The position numbers and the translations under genes were made by a program. Below the pieces are notes generated by a model. The model saw only the letters and a list, made by a program, of their open reading frames with translations, had not been told where the DNA came from and ran no database searches. A DNA stretch of 64,000 nucleotides, from sequence record ON529858.1. One strand, written 5' to 3'. This document shows, one piece after another, positions 27,518 through 53,752 of the stretch (the first letter of the stretch is position 1; each line of letters opens with the position of its first letter).

Positions 27518-28156
27518 CTACGATCCTGTCGAGCCGAACCCGCCCTGACCACGCTCGGTCGTGTCAAGCGCCGCGACCTCATCGGGTTCAGCGATGACGC
27601 ACTGCTCGAAAATGATCTGAGCGACGCGGTCGCCGGGCTGGATGACGAAGACCTCGTCGCGGGTGCCCGACACCAGGACGACCCTGATCTCGCCGGTGTA
27701 GTCGGCGTCGACCACACCGCCGATGACGTCCAGGCCCTGCTTGGCGGCGAGCCCGGACCGGCCGGCGATGCGCCCGTAGCAGCCCTCGGGCGGCGTCATG
27801 GCGATCCCGGTGGGGATGATGTGGCGCGAGCCGGAGTAGAACTCCAGCGGCGTGTCGCCGTCATAGTGCAGGTCCAGGCCGGCGGAGTTCGGCGAGCCCC
27901 GCGTCGGGATGGTCGCGGACGGCCGCACCTTCATGACCGAGAACTTGACCTTGCGCTCGTGTGGAATCATGGCGTCAATGGCCTCCCAGGTGAAGACGGC
28001 GACACTGCCGTCGATCTGGGCTACACCGACGCGGTCCTCGGCGCCATACAGAACCTCGACCGTGCCGTAGCCGGCCTCCCTCATCCGCTTGGCGAGACGG
28101 TGGGCGCGCTCCTGGTGGTCGATCCGCTTGAACGTGACGTAGCTGTTGGTCGCCAT
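27518..28156 (-). CDS. dut: Trimeric dUTPase with ~65-aa N-terminal extension
   Basis: SAGLDL, GRIAGRSGLA, GVVDADYTGEI, GDRVAQII, RGQGGFGSTG. Confidence 0.92.
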   Translation of the reverse strand: MATNSYVTFKRIDHQERAHRLAKRMREAGYGTVEVLYGAEDRVGVAQIDGSVAVFTWEAIDAMIPHERKVKFSVMKVRPSATIPTRGSPNSAGLDLHYDGDTPLEFYSGSRHIIPTGIAMTPPEGCYGRIAGRSGLAAKQGLDVIGGVVDADYTGEIRVVLVSGTRDEVFVIQPGDRVAQIIFEQCVIAEPDEVAALDTTERGQGGFGSTGS

Positions 28157-29460
28157 CAGGCGGCTCCGTTGACTTCTTGGGTGAAGGCGTCGGCGCCGCC
28201 AACGAACCGGATCACATCTCCGGACACGCTGTCGATCTCGAACACCATGGGAAACGTCTTCCAGCCGTCGTAGGCCTTCTTGATCTCTTCCCGCTTCAGG
28301 CGGTCGTCGATCTGGATGACCTCGTGCCGCAGGCCCTTGTCCGAGGCGAGCGCCTTGGCGCGAACGCAGTGCGGGCAGTCCGGCATCGTCAGGATGCGGT
28401 AGGTCGTCGCCACGCTCTTCTCGGTCGTGGTCCGCGTCAGCTTCTCGATCAGCAGGGCCTTGGAGCGATCGTGGTCCATGAAGGCGAAGGCCTTGTCCCA
28501 GCCCTTGACGCCGCCCTTGCCGTATTCGGTCGAGCGGCCTTCGAAGAAGTTGGTGTGCGTCGGCGCGTTCATGATCCAGTCGAGCCAGGGGAAGGGGTTT
28601 TCCTTCTGGCCGTAGTTCGGCTTCAGGCCGAGTTGGATCAGGCGGCGGTCGGCGATGTAGCGAATGTATTCCTTGGCTTGACCGATGGTGACGCCCATCA
28701 TGGTCTTCTCGCCCGACGCATCCACCTCGGCGAAGGTGTAGGCTTGGTCGATGAAGGCGTCTTCCAGCGTGACCATGTCGCGGCAGGCTTGGTAGATGCG
28801 CTTCTTGGTCTCGTCGTTCCAGGTGCGCGGGTGCTCCTTGACCACCGCGTGCATCAGCTTGATCATCGACGCGACGTGGTGCGACTCGTCGCGGATCGAC
28901 CACTCGACGATCGTGGTCATGCCCTTCATCAGGCCCTGGCGCTGGAAGTTCATCAGCAGCGCGAAGCTGGAGAACAACTGCATCCCTTCGCCGAAGGCCG
29001 AGAAGACGGCGATGTCGACGACCAGATCGGCGATCGACTTGCCGGTCTCGCGCTCCGCCATATACTCGTGCTTCTCGCGCATCGCTTCATAGGCCTGGAA
29101 GGCCTGATATTCGCTTTCCGGGATGCCGAGCGTGTCGATCAGGGTGGAGTAGGCGTGGATGTGGTTCGCCTCGGCCGTGGCGAAGGACGACAGCATCATG
29201 CGCAGTTCGGGGTGCTTGAACCGGGGCAGATACTTCTCGATGTATGCCGCCGCCACATCAACGTCAGCTTGTGTGAAGAACCTGAACAACTGAGTCAAGA
29301 ACTCGCGCTGAGCGACCGTCAGCTTCGTGTTCCAGTCCAGCAGGTCGTCAGCCATCGGGCTCTCGTGCGGGAGCCAGTGCATCGCCTGCATGACCTCGTA
29401 GGCCTCGAACGCCCACGGGTAGGAGAAGGGCTTGTAGAAGTCGCGGGATTCGAGAATCAT
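28156..29460 (-). CDS. nrdB: Class Ia ribonucleotide reductase beta subunit with C-terminal glutaredoxin fusion
   Basis: FFTQAD, EANHIHAY, EGMQLFSSF, RDESHH di-metal and Tyr motifs; C-terminal CPHC...TFPMVF glutaredoxin. Confidence 0.93.
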   Translation of the reverse strand: MILESRDFYKPFSYPWAFEAYEVMQAMHWLPHESPMADDLLDWNTKLTVAQREFLTQLFRFFTQADVDVAAAYIEKYLPRFKHPELRMMLSSFATAEANHIHAYSTLIDTLGIPESEYQAFQAYEAMREKHEYMAERETGKSIADLVVDIAVFSAFGEGMQLFSSFALLMNFQRQGLMKGMTTIVEWSIRDESHHVASMIKLMHAVVKEHPRTWNDETKKRIYQACRDMVTLEDAFIDQAYTFAEVDASGEKTMMGVTIGQAKEYIRYIADRRLIQLGLKPNYGQKENPFPWLDWIMNAPTHTNFFEGRSTEYGKGGVKGWDKAFAFMDHDRSKALLIEKLTRTTTEKSVATTYRILTMPDCPHCVRAKALASDKGLRHEVIQIDDRLKREEIKKAYDGWKTFPMVFEIDSVSGDVIRFVGGADAFTQEVNGAA

Positions 29461-40234: not shown

Positions 40235-42487
40235 TTAGTGGGTGTCGGACCAGCGCTGGCCGAACTTGACGGTCACATCGACGGGCAGGCGGAAGTCGAA
40301 GCGCTCGCCAGCGAGGCGGGCGGCCTCTTCCATGTTCTTCGAACAGATCATCCGGACGCGCGGGTCGTCGCGGACGGCGACCTGCATTTCGTCGTGGACC
40401 CACGCCAGGACCGCGAAGTCGCCGTCCCAGCCGCTCTTCAGGCCGTCTTCTTCGCAGAGTTGTTCGAACAGGACGCACCACGCCTTGGCGATCGTCGCGC
40501 CGGCGCCTTGCAGCAGCGTGTTCAGCGCCGAGTGCTTGGCCCGGACGTAGAGTTCGCGACCGTCGAGACCCAGGACGTAGCCGTGCTTCGCCATACGCTG
40601 CACGGCCTTGATGACCTGTTGCAGCGCGGGAATGCGCGTCATGATCCGGCGGCGCATTTCGGCGCCGAGAGCCTTGGCCTTCTGCGGGTAGAGCGAGACC
40701 GACGGATCGACGGTGCAGCCCAGCTTGTAGTCCTGGGCGCCGTAGATCATGGCGTAGATGAAGGTCTTGGCGAGGTCCCGGCTTTCCAGTTCCATCGCCT
40801 GCTGGTGGACGGCGTGGATGTCGCCGTTCAGCACGATCTCCCCGTAGGCGCCGCCGTCGAACTCCGCCATGAAGTGCGCCAGACAGCGCAGTTCGATACC
40901 GGCTTGGTCGGCGCCCATGAGCACCCAGCCCTCCGGCACATAGAACAGGTTCCGGCAGTCCCAGCCGTGGTCGCCCTCGCGGCCCTTCATCAGGACCTTC
41001 TTGGTCTTGACCTTGCCTTCGTCGTCCAGGATGAACTCGCCGGTCTCGGGGTCGCGGACCGGCTTGCCGAAGATTTGCTCGCCGTTCGGGCCAAGCAGCG
41101 GCGTGCCGTCCTCGTTGAACTGAGCCGGGCTCTTGAAGACGACGCGCGGGACCTGGGCGATGTTCGGGTTGGAGTGCGAGGCGCGGTTCGTGACCGTGCC
41201 GCCGACGACGATCCGGCCGTGAATCTTGCCGTCGCCGTTCCACTCTTCGCACTTGACCAGCCAGCCGTTCTTGCCGTCGACAAGCTGGCCGAGACGCTTC
41301 TTGAAGTAGAAGATTTCGGCGAGGTCTTCGCAGATCGGGATGACCAGACGGTTCGAGCCTTCCTCGCGCACCTGGGCGAGGTCGCGCAGGACCTCATCGT
41401 TCACCGACGGCGATCCGGCCTCGGTGAACTCCTGGGGCTCCCAGCCGTAGACCTTCTTCAGACGGTCGATGATCTGGGGGCGGGAGTTCGGGTTGAACTC
41501 GATCTTCTTGATGGCCGTGTAGGCGCAGCCGGCGGTGCGGTCGCCCCCGGAGACCTTGTTGTCCTTGTAGCGGATGTTCTTGGGCGGGACGGTGACCTCG
41601 CCCCAGAACTCGCGGCTCCCGTTCTCGCCGAACTCGGCACGCGGCCGGAAGCCCGGCTGGTCCTTCTCTTCCTTGCCGGTCTCGGGGTTCGTGTAGGTGG
41701 TCGAGTCGTTGACCTTCTTCCACTTCATGGGGACCCACCACGAGCCGAAGTGCTCGATGGCGGCCTCGGACAGCGCGTCCAGCGACGTCCGCAGGCTGGT
41801 CTCCAGGACGCGCGCCTGATCGCGGTCGAACGGGAAACCGTTGACCTGCACGCGCTCCATCATGTCGTGAACAAGGTGCTCCAGCTTGGTCGCGGTCTCG
41901 GACCACGGCTTCTGCTCGATCTTCGTCCAAAGCGCCTCGGTGACGGTGACGTCATTCTCGGCGTAGTCGTCCATCTCCTGATTCCACGTCGCCCAGACGT
42001 AGGTCATGATCTCTTCTTTGTCGGTCAGCCCGCGCGACTTGGCTTCCTCGATCTTGACGTCTGAATAGTCGCCCTTGGGGAAGCCGAGACGTTCGCCCCA
42101 GGCGCCGAGTTCGTGGGAGCCGATGTAGCCGCCGTAAAGCTGGCCGCGCTTCCACATCTTGAAGTCATTTTCCTTGATGTCTGCGAACAGCATCCGGGCC
42201 ATGACCATCGTGTCGCGCACGACGCCGCGCGGGTCGAAGTAGGACCCGTAGACCTTCCAGAGCGCCGGCATGTCGAAGCCGACGATGTTGTGGCCGACGA
42301 TCAGTTCGGCCTCGTTGAGCATGTCGATGCCGTCACGGATCGTGTCTTCACGATCGTTGCGACGGAAGCGCCAGACCTGACGGGTGTCGATGTCCTTGAT
42401 GACGATGATGTGGACGCGGGTCAGCTTGAGCAGCAGACCGTTCGTTTCGATGTCCCAAAGGAGGCGCCGGCCGCGAGGAATGATCAT
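40235..42487 (-). CDS. polA: Family A DNA polymerase, T7-type (3'-5' exo, thioredoxin-binding loop, Tyr at the 762-equivalent position)
   Basis: WDIETNG, GHNIVGFD, GADQAGIELR, AKTFIYAMIYGA, LNTLLQGAGA, WVHDE. Confidence 0.93.
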   Translation of the reverse strand: MIIPRGRRLLWDIETNGLLLKLTRVHIIVIKDIDTRQVWRFRRNDREDTIRDGIDMLNEAELIVGHNIVGFDMPALWKVYGSYFDPRGVVRDTMVMARMLFADIKENDFKMWKRGQLYGGYIGSHELGAWGERLGFPKGDYSDVKIEEAKSRGLTDKEEIMTYVWATWNQEMDDYAENDVTVTEALWTKIEQKPWSETATKLEHLVHDMMERVQVNGFPFDRDQARVLETSLRTSLDALSEAAIEHFGSWWVPMKWKKVNDSTTYTNPETGKEEKDQPGFRPRAEFGENGSREFWGEVTVPPKNIRYKDNKVSGGDRTAGCAYTAIKKIEFNPNSRPQIIDRLKKVYGWEPQEFTEAGSPSVNDEVLRDLAQVREEGSNRLVIPICEDLAEIFYFKKRLGQLVDGKNGWLVKCEEWNGDGKIHGRIVVGGTVTNRASHSNPNIAQVPRVVFKSPAQFNEDGTPLLGPNGEQIFGKPVRDPETGEFILDDEGKVKTKKVLMKGREGDHGWDCRNLFYVPEGWVLMGADQAGIELRCLAHFMAEFDGGAYGEIVLNGDIHAVHQQAMELESRDLAKTFIYAMIYGAQDYKLGCTVDPSVSLYPQKAKALGAEMRRRIMTRIPALQQVIKAVQRMAKHGYVLGLDGRELYVRAKHSALNTLLQGAGATIAKAWCVLFEQLCEEDGLKSGWDGDFAVLAWVHDEMQVAVRDDPRVRMICSKNMEEAARLAGERFDFRLPVDVTVKFGQRWSDTH

Positions 42488-47807: not shown

Positions 47808-47894
47808 TGGAGGAATGTGGCGGAATCGAACCGCCGGGTCTCTCGACCATCACAGATTTGCAGTCTGTGGCCTTACCACTCGGTCCAACATCCC
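47808..47894 (-). tRNA. tRNA with GCA (Cys) anticodon and long variable arm
   Basis: GGGAUGU/ACAUUCC acceptor, ACAGA-CUGCAAA-UCUGU, GGCGG-UUCGAUU-CCGCC, U73, encoded CCA. Confidence 0.88.
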
Positions 47895-49122: not shown

Positions 49123-49151
49123 TTGACACAGGGTGTCAACGAGCATATAGG
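49123..49151 (+). promoter_or_regulatory. sigma70 promoter of the tmRNA-tRNA operon
   Basis: TTGACA-N17-TATAGG. Confidence 0.8.
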
Positions 49152-49156
49152 GGAGA

Positions 49157-49570
49157 GATCGAGCAGATGCCTTCGGGCTGAAAACTGTGACATGAAAGAC
49201 GGGCCGGACTCGGGTGCGATTCCCGACGGCTCCACCAAAAGCGCCCATCCGGCATGTCAGACCTTCGGGTCGGTGTCAGGGGATGAGGCTAGTCCCCGGC
49301 GAAGAGGTGTCGTAGAACGCGCCCTCTACCGAAAGCCAGGGTGGACGCTTTTGTTGGGGCCGACCAGATTCGACGGGCGTTGGTAGTGAAGTGGGTTCGA
49401 TGGGTGGCTCCCCCAGCCAAGCACTGACAAATGTCGCTGCAAATGACAACGCTCCGTTCGCGGTGCGTGAAGCCATCGCCGCCTAATAAGCGGTAGAGGG
49501 GTGTCCGGAGGGGCGCCTGTCACAAAAAGCCACTCGCCTCCGGGCCGGTGGTTCCCTCCACCACCAGTTT
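49157..49570 (+). ncRNA. ssrA: Circularly permuted two-piece tmRNA (3' boundary approximate)
   Basis: Acceptor piece ending CUCGGG-UGCGAUU-CCCGA-CGGCUCC-A-CCA (49237) precedes the coding piece starting GGGGCCG (49356); G3-U70 pair; tag ORF ANDNAPFAVREAIAA* at 49439-49486; inter-piece pairing UGUGACA/UGUCACA. Confidence 0.93.
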
Positions 49571-49663
49571 CCAAAGGTGGGCTGCAACCTCCTACGTCGT
49601 GCTTCTCGGAGGCGACGGGTGGACCGCACCAAGCGCGGTCCTGACAAAGCGCAGCACATTTAT

Positions 49664-49742
49664 CGCGGGATAGAGGAGTCCGGTTGTCCTCGTCTGCCTC
49701 ATAAGCAGAAGATCGGGGGTTCAAATCCCCCTCCCGCATCCA
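49664..49742 (+). tRNA. tRNA-CAU, initiator-like (C1:A72, A11-U24) but lacking the three G-C anticodon-stem pairs
   Basis: CGCGGGA/UCCCGCA, UCUGC-CUCAUAA-GCAGA, GGGGG-UUCAAAU-CCCCC, U73-CCA. Confidence 0.92.
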
Positions 49743-49876: not shown

Positions 49877-49961
49877 CGTGCGATGGCCGAGTGGTCTATG
49901 GCGGCGGGCTCATAACTCGCTGGAGCAATCCGCGTTGGTTCGAATCCAACTCGCACGTCCA
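49877..49961 (+). tRNA. tRNA-CAU with class II long variable arm
   Basis: CGUGCGA/UCGCACG, GCGGG-CUCAUAA-CUCGC, V-arm UGGAGCAAUCCGC, GUUGG-UUCGAAU-CCAAC, U73-CCA. Confidence 0.9.
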
Positions 49962-50436: not shown

Positions 50437-50835
50437 CTAAAGTCGACCCGAGTTGTATTCGGCCCAGCGATCCGACCAGTATTCCTCGTAGTCCTCGGCG
50501 CAGTCCGTGCAGAGCCAGACCTTGTTCGGGTCGGGCTCGCCGCTCTTGGGGTCCCAGACGTAGCAGGTCATCGACCCAGGCTGATGCACGCCGTAGAAGG
50601 AGCCGCAGTTCTCGCAGCCGCCGAGCGCGGCGCCCTGCTCGGCGAAGTGACCGTTGATGGCCCAGCGCAGGCGGTTGAAGTTACCCCAGATCAGGTGCTT
50701 GAAGGCGTTCCGCAGGAACCACGTCCTGGTGCCGTATCGCACGGTCCAGCGCATCGGCTCCCAGGTGAAGACCTTGACCTTCTCGATCGTGACCGGGCCG
50801 ATCACGACCTTCTCAGGTGTCCATGATAGCGTCAA
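50437..50835 (-). CDS. Hypothetical Cys-rich (possible Zn-binding) protein; start uncertain
   Basis: CENC...C...CTDC pattern; Trp-rich. Confidence 0.55.
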   Translation of the reverse strand: MTLSWTPEKVVIGPVTIEKVKVFTWEPMRWTVRYGTRTWFLRNAFKHLIWGNFNRLRWAINGHFAEQGAALGGCENCGSFYGVHQPGSMTCYVWDPKSGEPDPNKVWLCTDCAEDYEEYWSDRWAEYNSGRL

Positions 50836-52711
50836 TGTTGTCCGCCTTTTCTTTCGAGGCTTGAGCGATCCGGGCGTCGAGCGACCCGTCCGCCATGAGG
50901 AAGAAGACCATGATCTTGAAGGCCGTCTGGCCGATTCTGCACGCCCGGTCCTCACATTGTTCCATGAGGGTCGGAGTCCAGTCTGCTTCCAGGAAGCACA
51001 CGTCAGACGCGCGTGTCAGCGTAAATCCAACCCCGGCGGCTTGCAGGTTGCCGATGAAGACGCGGCAGGATTCGTCCTCCTGGAAGCGGTCGACCTCGGG
51101 CTGACGCTTCTTCAAGGGCGTGCCACCGTAGACCACCGCCGGATTGTATTCGGCCAGGGCCTCCTTGACGGCGAGCACGACGTCGGAGTGGTAGGCGAAG
51201 ATCAGCAGCTTTTCGCCGCCCTCCAGGAAGTTCTTCAGCCAGGGGATGGCGGCCGACAGCTTGGCGAGGCCCAGGTCGCGGCGGACCTGGGCGATCTCTT
51301 CGAACATGACCTGGACCATGGGCTCGGACAGGCCGAGCACGGCGGCGGCGTAGGGCAGGTTGATGGCGCGGCTATTCGGCCGATCGGGGTCCCCGTCTTG
51401 ACCGACGGCGCGGTCGAAGCCCATCTTGAAGGCGTTGTCCATCGCCGACAGTCCCATGCGGATGTCGCGCTCTTCGGGCGTCTCATCCGCCGGCGCCAGG
51501 ACCGTCGACTCATAGAGCCGCATGGCCTGGGCGATCTCATCCTCGCGGGCGACGAGTTCCCTGATCTCGGGGCTGTCCAGGAGCACGACCTGACGGAACT
51601 TGTCGGGCAGTTCGGGCAGCACCTCCTTCTTCTGGCGCCGCACCATGAACATCTCGCGCAGCCGGGCGCCCAACTCTTCACGGTTCGACGACCCGGTGAA
51701 GTCGTAGGAGCCGCGCGGGCCGCGCATGGGGTCGAACCAGCCGTTGCAGTAGCGGTAGCCGAACTCCAGATAGTCGGAGCCCAGGCCGTCGGGATCGAAG
51801 GCCTTGACCATCGGCCACAGTTCGATCGGCCGGTTCATCATCGGGGTCCCCGACAGGAACAGCCGGCGCTTGGCGTCGATGGCGTTGAACCACTTCACAC
51901 CCTTCTTCTTGCGGGCCTTGCGTCGCGCGCCGGCGTCGCACTGAGCATCGCCCAGGACGAACAGGGTCCGGCCGCTGTCGGGCGTCTTCAGGACGTGGCA
52001 TTCGTCGCAGATCAGAATATCCCAGACGCGGTCCGCGATCGGGGTGCTGAAGCGCTCCAGGATGTCGTAGTTGATGATCACGACTTCGGTGTCAGGCCAC
52101 CACGTCTTATGCACCTCGGTCCGGAACTTGGGCTTGCCCTTGTTCTTGCCGGACTTGATCAGGCCGTCGGGAATCTTCTCGCGGTGCTGGGTCTCGGCGA
52201 TGCCGACCGACAGGCCCTTGGCGTCCCACTTCTCCCACTCGCGCTTCCAGTTGACCTTCAGCGAGGCCGGCACGACGACCAGGATTTGGCGGGCGCGGCG
52301 CAGGGCGTTCGCCACGCCGATCGCCTGGATTGTCTTACCCAACCCTGGCGGGTCTCCGAAGAGGGTGTCCTTGCGTCCAGGTTGTGTCGCGTAGTCGATC
52401 CCCGCCTTCTGGAACGGCTTGTAGTCGATCCCCATGTCGAGCAGCGCCTGGGGGATCGGCGGGTTGTAGGTGGTCGAGGCCTTGTAGGAGAGGTCGCGGC
52501 TGATCTCGGCGTTGCGCAGCCGATCCTCGATCTGCTGGATCGCGCGCTCGCTCCAGGTCGCGCCCTTGACGGCCTGCGCATCCTTCTGGCGCTGGGTGAT
52601 CCAGGCCTTGCGCCGGCTGCTGTAGGTGAAGCCGGCGCCCTTGAAGAGGTCGCGGTCCTCCCACGCACCGATGCCGTAGAAGAAGCCGTCGCTATAGTCG
52701 ATATGCGCCAA
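50813..52711 (-). CDS. SNF2/HARP-like SF2 helicase
   Basis: GDPPGLGKTIQ, DECH, SGTP, AAGVGFTLT, QCEDRACRIGQ. Confidence 0.92.
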   Translation of the reverse strand: MAHIDYSDGFFYGIGAWEDRDLFKGAGFTYSSRRKAWITQRQKDAQAVKGATWSERAIQQIEDRLRNAEISRDLSYKASTTYNPPIPQALLDMGIDYKPFQKAGIDYATQPGRKDTLFGDPPGLGKTIQAIGVANALRRARQILVVVPASLKVNWKREWEKWDAKGLSVGIAETQHREKIPDGLIKSGKNKGKPKFRTEVHKTWWPDTEVVIINYDILERFSTPIADRVWDILICDECHVLKTPDSGRTLFVLGDAQCDAGARRKARKKKGVKWFNAIDAKRRLFLSGTPMMNRPIELWPMVKAFDPDGLGSDYLEFGYRYCNGWFDPMRGPRGSYDFTGSSNREELGARLREMFMVRRQKKEVLPELPDKFRQVVLLDSPEIRELVAREDEIAQAMRLYESTVLAPADETPEERDIRMGLSAMDNAFKMGFDRAVGQDGDPDRPNSRAINLPYAAAVLGLSEPMVQVMFEEIAQVRRDLGLAKLSAAIPWLKNFLEGGEKLLIFAYHSDVVLAVKEALAEYNPAVVYGGTPLKKRQPEVDRFQEDESCRVFIGNLQAAGVGFTLTRASDVCFLEADWTPTLMEQCEDRACRIGQTAFKIMVFFLMADGSLDARIAQASKEKADNIDAIMDT

Positions 52712-52769: not shown

Positions 52770-52785
52770 GTCAAGATTCGCGACG
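52770..52785 (-). promoter_or_regulatory. Phage promoter motif copy upstream of the helicase
   Basis: Minus strand CGTCG-CGAATC-TTGAC. Confidence 0.7.
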
Positions 52786-52992
52786 TTCCAGGATCACGCC
52801 GCCGGGCACGAACCGGATGCCCTCATGCGTCAGCGCCACCAGGATCGACGCCATCACGGCGCGGATCGGCTCACGGGCGCCGCGTTCGAAGTCGGCCAGG
52901 GTCGACAGACCGACGTTGGCGGCCTGCGCGAGGTCCGCCTGGGTCCAGTCCAGCAGCGCGCGCGCCGCCTTGATCTGGAGGCGGCCCGTCAC
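52771..52992 (-). CDS. Small XRE-family HTH protein
   Basis: QIKAARALLDWTQADLAQAANVGLSTLADFERG; GTGA overlap with the thioredoxin stop. Confidence 0.82.
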   Translation of the reverse strand: MTGRLQIKAARALLDWTQADLAQAANVGLSTLADFERGAREPIRAVMASILVALTHEGIRFVPGGVILERRES

Positions 52993-53324
52993 AGGCGAGC
53001 GGGGAACTTGGCTTCGCGGAGCCATTCGTCGAGGATTTCGCGCGTGGGCGCCCCGACCTTCGACGCGACCATCTGGCCGTTCCGGTAGAAGACGCAGGTC
53101 GGCAGACCCTTCACGCCCTGTTCCTCGGGCACGACCGGGCTGGCCTCGACGTCGATCTTGGCGACCTTGACGCGCCCGCGCAGATCGTAGGCGAGGTCTT
53201 CCAGGATCGGCAGCGCCATGCGCGCCGGGCCGCTCCAGTCCGCCATGAAGAAGGCGATCGTCGGCACGTCCGACTTCAGGACCTGCTTGTCGAAGCTGTC
53301 GTCGTTGACAATGATCGCGCGCAT
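52989..53324 (-). CDS. Thioredoxin-fold protein lacking both active-site cysteines (WSGPA)
   Basis: NDDSFDKQVLKSDVP...FMADWSGPARM...VKVAKIDV...GVKGLPT...SKVGA aligns by eye with TrxA. Confidence 0.88.
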   Translation of the reverse strand: MRAIIVNDDSFDKQVLKSDVPTIAFFMADWSGPARMALPILEDLAYDLRGRVKVAKIDVEASPVVPEEQGVKGLPTCVFYRNGQMVASKVGAPTREILDEWLREAKFPARL

Positions 53325-53752
53325 CAGTCGCCCCTTCTCAGTCCAAAATACGCCCACCAGTTCCGCTTGCGCTGGGCGGGCACAAACGAGGTCATCTGCG
53401 GTCCATTGGTGACCGGGTCAAGACCTTCCTTCTCCCAATGCGCCTTGTAGCGCTCGACCTGGGGCAGGGGATCGAAGGGCACGCCCCGGATCGCGGCGAA
53501 GACGCCGGCGGTCAGGATGCCCGAGATGTCGTCGGCATGGCCCAGGCCGAACCGCTCGCGGAAGTGCTTGACGATGGGCGAGTTGTCGTCCCACAGGCTC
53601 AGGTCGTTGCGGATCGACGTGCCGTAGCCGTGATGGACCGAGACGTGCGTGGTGATCTCGCGCTGCTTGATCATCATGCGCGAGGTCTCGGGCATCTCGA
53701 CCACCAGCATGTCGATGGCGTCTTCCATCGTCGTCGGAATCTTGGTGGTCAA
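53324..53752 (-). CDS. Hypothetical protein (resembles DUF6794)
   Basis: HHGYGTSIRNDLSLW...GHADDISGIL; recalled similarity, not searched. Confidence 0.55.
   Translation of the reverse strand: MTTKIPTTMEDAIDMLVVEMPETSRMMIKQREITTHVSVHHGYGTSIRNDLSLWDDNSPIVKHFRERFGLGHADDISGILTAGVFAAIRGVPFDPLPQVERYKAHWEKEGLDPVTNGPQMTSFVPAQRKRNWWAYFGLRRGD

Follow-up and report, generated by a model that had tools for sequence, protein, structure and literature searches.

A cysteine-less thioredoxin of Brevundimonas phage vB_BgoS-Bajun as a candidate structural subunit of its T7-type DNA polymerase

What use can a phage make of a thioredoxin in which both active-site cysteines have been replaced? The question is raised by the gene BAJUN_03190, located on the minus strand of a 64,000-nucleotide stretch (the window, that is, the whole DNA analysed) that forms the terminal part of the giant Brevundimonas phage vB_BgoS-Bajun (ON529858.1, 207 kb, Dolichocephalovirinae, phiCbK group). 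Positions refer to this window and were obtained by subtracting 143261 from the positions in ON529858.1; the segment 50000-56000, which contains the gene, matches the end of that record with 100% identity. A preliminary description of the locus, made from the sequence alone, had proposed that the phage turned thioredoxin into a private, oxidation-proof processivity factor for its DNA polymerase. The comparisons presented here, together with the analogy with phage T7, make it moderately probable that the Bajun thioredoxin is a dedicated non-redox structural subunit (processivity factor) of the T7-type polymerase of the phage.

Thioredoxin fold, active site and maintenance of the gene

The open reading frame (ORF) of the Bajun thioredoxin begins with the ATG at 53324-53322 and encodes a single-domain protein (MRAIIVNDDSFDKQVLKSDVPTIAFFMADWSGPARMALPILEDLAYDLRGRVKVAKIDVEASPVVPEEQGVKGLPTCVFYRNGQMVASKVGAPTREILDEWLREAKFPARL), whose 111-residue start is supported by the Shine-Dalgarno sequence GAAGGGG that precedes it. 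The gene is named "exonuclease" in GenBank, a label that is wrong and for which the sequence offers no support. The only Pfam match was Thioredoxin PF00085 (E 9.8e-20, profile positions 3-102 of 103), and phmmer searches against the PDB retrieved thioredoxins with E-values down to 2e-26. The AlphaFold2 (AF2) model (pLDDT 95.6, element order b-a-b-a-b-a-b-b-a) was superimposed by Foldseek on Caulobacter Trx1 (6esx) at 0.7 Å with a TM of 0.92 and on the T7-bound E. coli thioredoxin (1t7p_B) at 1.0 Å. The CnoX/YbbN chaperedoxins combine a thioredoxin domain bearing SxxC with a TPR domain, and no such C-terminal TPR domain is present in the Bajun protein.

The replacement of both active-site cysteines, as given in the preliminary description, was confirmed from the ORF, the stretch FFMADWSGPAR corresponding to C32->S and C35->A in E. 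coli numbering. Two further changes had been missed in that description: the buried Asp26, the proton shuttle, is replaced by Phe, and Trp28 by Met. The sole cysteine left (in PTCVF) varies in the orthologues. The groove elements said to be kept, W-x-G-P, the cis-Pro loop GVKGLPT and the Gly92 loop KVGA, are all present, and P75 and G91 are invariant throughout the set of phage thioredoxins compared. Missing, too, is the redox-active CxxC for reduction of the C-terminal disulfide of ribonucleotide reductase (RNR). As judged from its sequence and its model, the Bajun protein is a well-folded thioredoxin incapable of dithiol chemistry.

An exhaustive HMMER pass over 1.84 billion representatives revealed no relative more than 47% identical to the Bajun thioredoxin. 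Among the best single-domain matches, two lack both cysteines, P0036 (WSGPA) and P0139 (WSGPS). The former is encoded on a 1.8-kb metagenome contig (L003) in the same order as in Bajun, that is, a hypothetical gene, DUF6794, thioredoxin, a small ORF and an SNF2 helicase, and a search with the neighbouring DUF6794 gave two further Bajun-like contigs (L052 and L053) in which DUF6794 is followed by a thioredoxin with WAGPS and no cysteine. The thioredoxins of these four lineages are 38-55% identical, all Cys-less, encoded by intact ORFs and found in DUF6794-thioredoxin synteny. The residues that replace the two cysteines differ among the orthologues (SGPA vs AGPS), but G-P and the residues on either side are retained. 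When Bajun is compared with L003, the longest invariant stretches (ADWSGPAR, KG-x-PT and K-x-GAPT) correspond to the three partner-groove loops. The ratio of nonsynonymous to synonymous substitution rates (dN/dS) was 0.21 for the closest pair, the only unsaturated one; the values of 0.6-1.1 for the deep pairs are uninformative because dS is saturated and GC-biased. Considering the intact Cys-less orthologues, this low ratio and the conserved groove loops, the Bajun gene is, on these alignments, a maintained non-redox thioredoxin under purifying selection and not a decaying gene.

Further searches enlarged this group no more. Over 5.8 billion proteins, a word-indexed search with the Bajun thioredoxin alone matched only the query itself, and with a three-sequence profile it returned only the three known ADWSGP proteins and one SxxC protein. 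A scan of metagenome contigs yielded 22 loci, all of them ordinary thioredoxins with WCGPC that the N-terminal pattern had picked up. Scans of IMG/VR with F[MT]ADWSG and with a DNA pattern for F-x-A-D-W-S-G-P-[AS] gave one chance match, one short WCGPS protein and no orthologue. Neither the thioredoxin nor DUF6794 had a match in PHROGs. P0139 was rejected as a further orthologue since it adjoins a bacterial MDR-type oxidoreductase gene and looks like an independent bacterial case.

Two of these sequences may be described further. The bacterial chromosomal thioredoxin with WSGPS (L004:834-1172, high-GC metagenome contig, neighbour an MDR-type oxidoreductase gene) has lost Asp26 and Trp28 as well, so that Cys-less thioredoxins arise in bacteria too. 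The short WCGPS protein is a thioredoxin-like ORF of about 80 residues with this monothiol site, on a 94-kb viral contig of 42% GC (L030:2865-2890, IMG/VR UViG_3300037628_000218).

The polymerase loop and the distribution of incomplete active sites

The Bajun polymerase aligns end to end with the T7 DNA polymerase of the PDB (E 3e-107), including the thioredoxin-binding loop that the preliminary description had recognised. In an alignment-level comparison this thumb loop has 87 residues in Bajun and 76 in T7, and the motifs FGSWW, P-x-TGK and AG-x-x-Y-T are common to both. All 13 clade polymerases aligned have a loop of 67-96 residues at the position of the T7 thioredoxin-binding loop. The same loop was noted in the phiCbK polymerase by Gill et al. 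in 2012, who proposed an unknown partner for it (PMC3556154).

In a molecular dynamics study of the T7 complex, the most persistent hydrogen bond was that between thioredoxin I75 and polymerase T327, with further contacts between R73 and V329/E330, K90 and E319, A93 and P325, and I72 and Y265 (PMC5984650). At the positions of I72, R73, I75, K90 and A93 the Bajun thioredoxin has V, K, L, K and A, and at those of Y265, E319, P325, T327, V329 and E330 the Bajun polymerase has W, D, A, T, I and K. The contact positions are therefore mostly conservative relative to T7, except for E330, replaced by Lys, although the thioredoxin residues are conserved in ordinary thioredoxins as well. The residue equivalent to T327, which lies against the thioredoxin active site in T7, is Cys ([YF]-C-P-[VI]) in 8 of the 8 thioredoxin-less Dolichocephalovirinae-type polymerases examined (phiCbK, Karma, Rogue, CcrBL9, Colossus, Gurke, Kabachok and the metagenomic UViG L171; loop loci L040, L041, L042, L059, L086, L087, L169 and L171). 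Within the subfamily it is Thr in Bajun alone, the only member with a Cys-less thioredoxin of its own, and where a clade phage has a crippled thioredoxin of its own, the residue is Val or Thr. This co-variation fits a direct interface between thioredoxin and polymerase, and the Cys hints, in these alignments, that the thioredoxin-less relatives could engage host Trx1 through a thiol.

The clade of the Bajun polymerase comprises large siphophages of Alphaproteobacteria. Identity to the Bajun enzyme is 56-73% in the phiCbK group, 49% in jumbo Brevundimonas phages and 40-43% in Microcystis Mwe-JY26, Citromicrobium RXM, Mesorhizobium Cp1R7A-A1, the DSS3-phi-8 group, Erythrobacter XM05 and Sphingobium Lacusarx. 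CxxC was incomplete in each of the 12 thioredoxins retrieved from phages of this clade or from Bajun-like metagenomic relatives: WSGPA in Bajun and L003, WAGPS in L052 and L053, FCGPS in Erythrobacter L02, FCGPT in Erythrobacter XM05, WCAPS in Lacusarx, and WAGPC in RcXuper, RpAliso, DSS3P8, MAL1 and MD18. Asp26 and Trp28 are also lost from these crippled thioredoxins, the two positions being hydrophobic and variable. As the nucleophilic cysteine is absent from AxxC and both cysteines are absent from SxxA, at least two of the groups should be unable to reduce disulfides. The twelve sequences represent three or four lineages, and not twelve independent events.

By comparison, CxxC was kept in all six phage thioredoxins from outside the clade (FLC9, JWAlpha, BDU-MI-1, Motura, BRock and BcepSauron) and in 81/81 thioredoxin domains from 80 IMG/VR loci, 80 of which domains also kept D and W. 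These IMG/VR domains were chosen by an N-terminal pattern, without regard to the active site, and none of the 80 loci had a T7-like polymerase within 10 kb. Thioredoxins with incomplete CxxC are thus associated, clade-wide, with the polymerase type of Bajun. The co-occurrence suggested as a check in the preliminary description was found, incomplete sites appearing in phages of the Bajun polymerase clade only. The contrary pattern that it had named, Cys-less thioredoxins common in phages lacking the loop, did not appear among the controls, all of which have CxxC.

Some other features of these phages were recorded. The polymerases of all clade members contain a second insertion that T7 does not have, located between the motifs PNIAQVPRV and GADQAGIELR (residues ~450-518 in Bajun). 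It measures ~50-70 residues in Bajun and phiCbK but far exceeds 100 in CcrBL9 and Gurke. Directly downstream of the WAGPC thioredoxin of RcXuper, a gene annotated as hypothetical (L032:3330-3779) encodes an Acb1 anti-CBASS phosphodiesterase (Pfam E 6e-34). In Erythrobacter L02 (L031:2438-3004) and Lacusarx (L047:22102-22668) the CxxS thioredoxin gene is overlapped at its start by an ORF of 188 residues without Pfam match; this may be a conserved pairing in this group, distinct from that with DUF6794.

Candidate roles of the Bajun thioredoxin

The Bajun thioredoxin has lost all thiol-disulfide chemistry but keeps the canonical partner groove, which is made up of the WxGP, cis-Pro (G-[LV]-P-T) and K-[VL]-G-A loops. 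As a polymerase subunit, its most probable role, it would bind the long thumb loop of the polymerase non-covalently, as E. coli thioredoxin does in T7. Once docked, it would impose order on this loop above the duplex and thereby increase processivity, and a phage-supplied, non-oxidisable subunit would make replication independent of the amount or the redox state of host Trx1. We infer that the two proteins bind physically, that the polymerase is stimulated and that the phage gains a selective advantage; the "oxidation-proof, host-independent" rationale of the preliminary description is plausible. The alternative redox client is already served, since the beta subunit of RNR has a glutaredoxin of its own, as stated in the preliminary description, in the form of a C-terminal domain with an intact CPHC (residues 362-365). 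The fusion, reported for phiCbK as early as 2012 and conserved in Bajun, indicates that the phage keeps working thiol chemistry where it is needed.

The T7 gp5/E. coli TrxA complex (1T7P) resembles the proposed Bajun pair in the thioredoxin fold (1.0 Å), the polymerase family, the homologous thumb loop and the conservatively kept positions I72/R73/I75/K90/A93, which ordinary thioredoxins keep as well. It differs in that its thioredoxin is encoded by the host and has the catalytic cysteines, Asp26 and Trp28, in that its loop is 11 residues shorter, and in one salt bridge that Bajun does not have. The processivity role of TrxA needs no redox chemistry, as the preliminary description had stated: E. 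coli thioredoxin with Cys32 and Cys35 substituted still stimulates T7 polymerase (Huber, Russel, Model and Richardson 1986, cited in PMC3997047), whereas binding of the Bajun thioredoxin to its polymerase is a prediction. Those engineered proteins are laboratory variants of a host enzyme, while the Bajun thioredoxin would be their natural counterpart, with time to co-adapt and with the extra changes at positions 26 and 28. The engineered Cys32/Cys35 mutants reportedly bind gp5 more weakly than the wild type. A T327C-Cys32 disulfide has reportedly been engineered in T7 as well, and no weight is placed on it here.

Several observations weigh against the assignment to the polymerase. In at least eight relatives the loop is just as long but a phage thioredoxin is missing, the syntenic region of phiCbK-like phages contains no thioredoxin, and tblastn organism counts indicate that at most a handful of ~40 Caulobacter-phage records could carry one; this polymerase type can therefore do without the phage factor, or host thioredoxin suffices. 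The gene is situated in a variable segment flanked by the helicase and rIIB, at 10.5 kb from the polymerase gene (about 10 kb in the preliminary description), and it is translationally coupled to DUF6794 and not to the polymerase, the stop codon of DUF6794 sharing bases with the thioredoxin ATG (TGATG) and both genes being adjacent in 4/4 Bajun-like contigs. Between Bajun and phiCbK the loop is 60% identical and the remainder of the polymerase 74%, so that by this comparison the Bajun loop is not unusually diverged: the usual gap between loop and core is found, without any jump. In addition, the T7 salt bridge E330-R73 would become K-K in Bajun, the conserved thioredoxin surface is the generic groove used for every thioredoxin partner, and the Cys/Thr co-variation within the subfamily is a single evolutionary change to which no probability can be attached.

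The cyanophage Syn5 offers a further counterexample. Like Bajun it encodes a thioredoxin and a T7-like polymerase, and its thioredoxin raises genome replication, but AF3 modelling predicted binding of the host thioredoxin to the polymerase and no binding of the phage one (bioRxiv 10.1101/2025.10.05.680603), so that a phage-encoded thioredoxin is not automatically a processivity factor. The Syn5 protein has a canonical site, is redox-active and was proposed as an RNR donor; the Bajun thioredoxin cannot serve RNR, and as the redox route is closed to it the two cases differ. On the whole, the processivity proposal of the preliminary description is supported in part, by the non-redox fold, selection, the partner loop, co-occurrence and the co-varying residue, and is weakened by the loop-bearing relatives without thioredoxin, the coupling to DUF6794 and the generic groove.

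The codon overlap and the constant adjacency to DUF6794 would also be expected if the redox-dead thioredoxin were a structural or chaperone subunit of some other partner, with DUF6794 as the prime candidate, or of a host protein, as TrxA is for toxins and response regulators. Redox-independent chaperone roles of TrxA are documented (PMC11606950), and a groove of generic nature favours no particular partner. Such a role is nevertheless considered unlikely, given that DUF6794 exists without any thioredoxin in Bertelyvirus phages, an uncultured jumbo phage, contig L054 and many metagenome contigs, and that its structural model has no match suggestive of a thioredoxin client. The other groups with crippled thioredoxins have different neighbours, with no DUF6794 match among those of Erythrobacter, Lacusarx and DSS3P8; what these groups have in common is the polymerase. 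No Pfam family is common to the upstream neighbours of the thioredoxin in L02, Lacusarx, RcXuper and the control phage BDU-MI-1. In the TrxA chaperone role described for the ADP-ribosyltransferase toxin TreX (PMC11606950), a partner segment occupies the groove of the reduced form without any redox reaction, as proposed for Bajun, but there it is the normal, redox-competent host TrxA that moonlights, and not a Cys-less paralogue devoted to the task.

It appears quite improbable that the protein is a decoy or dominant-negative thioredoxin, one that would tie up the thioredoxin reductase of the host or the clients of Trx1 with no turnover and so rewire or shut down redox-dependent host processes in the course of infection. 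Such a decoy agrees with the retained groove, with the closest cellular relatives being Brevundimonas TrxA (43%) and Caulobacter Trx1 (41%), and with the harm to the host reported for expression of the active Syn5 thioredoxin (bioRxiv 10.1101/2025.10.05.680603); in the absence of Cys32, however, no covalent trapping could occur and an abundant host protein would have to be outcompeted by affinity alone, and the decoy would leave unexplained both the confinement of crippled thioredoxins to one polymerase type and the Cys-to-Thr change at the polymerase contact. Drift towards loss of a functionless remnant of a captured host thioredoxin is very improbable. The gene is missing from most relatives and evolves fast, its orthologues being 38-55% identical compared with 55-63% for the neighbouring DUF6794, and the deep-pair dN/dS values are 0.6-1.1, although the dS behind them is saturated and GC-biased. 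A remnant is hard to reconcile, however, with intact ORFs with a strong Shine-Dalgarno sequence and coupled translation in four lineages, with the low dN/dS of the unsaturated pair, with a very confident AF2 model, with groove loops that are the best conserved blocks, and with the maintenance of crippled thioredoxins by three other phage groups.

The polymerase-subunit reading can be extended to the whole clade, although in this form it is rather doubtful. The alphaproteobacterial siphophages would have domesticated thioredoxin as a non-redox replisome subunit, with the site disabled in at least three ways (SxxA/AxxS, CxxS/T and AxxC); the relatives lacking the gene would use host Trx1, possibly captured by the polymerase Cys through a mixed disulfide, and Bajun would have removed the thiols from both sides of the interface.

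As regards origin, Caulobacter Trx1, one of the two nearest cellular relatives mentioned above, shares an EWL-x-EA C-terminus with the Bajun thioredoxin, and capture from the host lineage is compatible with these sequences. In the free tree the Bajun group is joined to the Erythrobacter/Lacusarx group (96/88), on long branches, and approximately unbiased (AU) tests reject neither monophyly of the crippled phage thioredoxins (p 0.30) nor a clade of Bajun with Caulobacterales Trx1 (p 0.145). An older origin, shared among phages, is left open by the tree and the AU tests.

Gene neighbourhood, related thioredoxins and implications

The features of the window considered in this work are listed in Table 1.

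Table 1. Position of the thioredoxin gene, its proposed partner and other features in the window
Feature	Position	Strand	Evidence
Cys-less thioredoxin gene BAJUN_03190, 111 aa	52989..53324	-	ORF, PF00085, PDB, AF2, Foldseek
Degenerate active site W-S-G-P-A in place of WCGPC, residues 30-34	53223..53237	-	sequence, alignment
Shine-Dalgarno GAAGGGG, 5 nt before the thioredoxin ATG	53331..53337	-	direct sequence read
T7 gp5-like family A DNA polymerase, 750 aa, proposed partner	40235..42487	-	phmmer vs PDB; GenBank 'DNA polymerase'
Polymerase thumb loop, residues 244-330, 87 aa, homologous to T7 loop 258-333	41498..41758	-	alignment
Thr at polymerase residue 324, T7 T327 equivalent	41516-41518	-	alignment
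Second polymerase insertion	~40930-41140		
DUF6794 gene, 142 aa, stop overlaps thioredoxin start	53324..53752	-	Pfam PF20594 E 4.6e-12
XRE-type helix-turn-helix (HTH) gene, GTG start overlaps thioredoxin stop	52771..52992	-	Pfam HTH_3, GenBank
SNF2-family helicase, next in minus-strand replication block downstream	50813..52711	-	Pfam SNF2-rel_dom, Helicase_C
RNR beta fused to C-terminal glutaredoxin domain	28156..29460	-	Pfam Ribonuc_red_sm + Glutaredoxin
Permuted two-piece tmRNA	49145-49577		annotated in GenBank
tRNA-Cys and two tRNA-Met flanking the tmRNA	47808-47894, 49664-49742, 49877-49961		annotated in GenBank

The AF2 model of DUF6794 (pLDDT 90) is all-alpha, and a structural search of the PDB with it gave no match with E below 4.9; the fold of DUF6794 lends no support to its being the key partner. 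The family has invariant H40, R48-N49, W54 and D74-D75 (the last in a near-invariant HADD), and these residues suggest, by their conservation, a functional site. On the other side of the thioredoxin gene, its stop codon shares bases with the start of the HTH gene (GTGA), whose homologues in phiCbK-like phages occupy a quite different genome position. XRE transcription factors common to Caulobacter and phiCbK modulate adhesin development and phage production, and the Bajun homologue was named in that work (bioRxiv 10.1101/2023.08.20.554034). The orthologue of the SNF2 helicase comes after the thioredoxin in L003 too. The transfer-messenger RNA (tmRNA) encodes the tag peptide VAANDNAPFAVREAIAA.

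The thioredoxins of the DSS3-phi-8-like roseophages, the Erythrobacter CbK-like phages and Lacusarx belong with Bajun to a common polymerase clade (40-41% identical) and have an incomplete CxxC like that of Bajun, but they keep one cysteine (AxxC, CxxS or CxxT), whereas the Bajun group keeps none. In the papers examined they are annotated as ordinary thioredoxins or RNR donors. Zhan et al. (2016) considered that the DSS3-phi-8 thioredoxin might help the T7-like polymerase (PMC4961962), and in the Erythrobacter phage paper the thioredoxin gene was called an RNR hydrogen donor. No mention of degenerate active sites or of a Cys-less phage thioredoxin was found in the literature searched, the coverage of which is incomplete. 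Several GenBank records label such genes as ordinary thioredoxin, RNR donor or "exonuclease".

That T7 uses host thioredoxin in a clamp-like role is a textbook peculiarity for which there is essentially a single known system. If the proposed pairing is true, the Bajun thioredoxin and its polymerase would amount to a natural Cys-to-Ser experiment in which the structural role alone can be selected, and thioredoxin-type processivity factors that require no reductant would be possible reagents. The clade provides a comparative series, made up of three kinds of crippled site and of thioredoxin-less relatives with Cys at the docking residue, that bears on the evolution of polymerase-accessory interfaces and on whether the redox state of host thioredoxin limits phage replication. 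The same series bears on what serves as processivity factor in phiCbK, a model phage of Caulobacter, for whose polymerase loop a partner was postulated in 2012.

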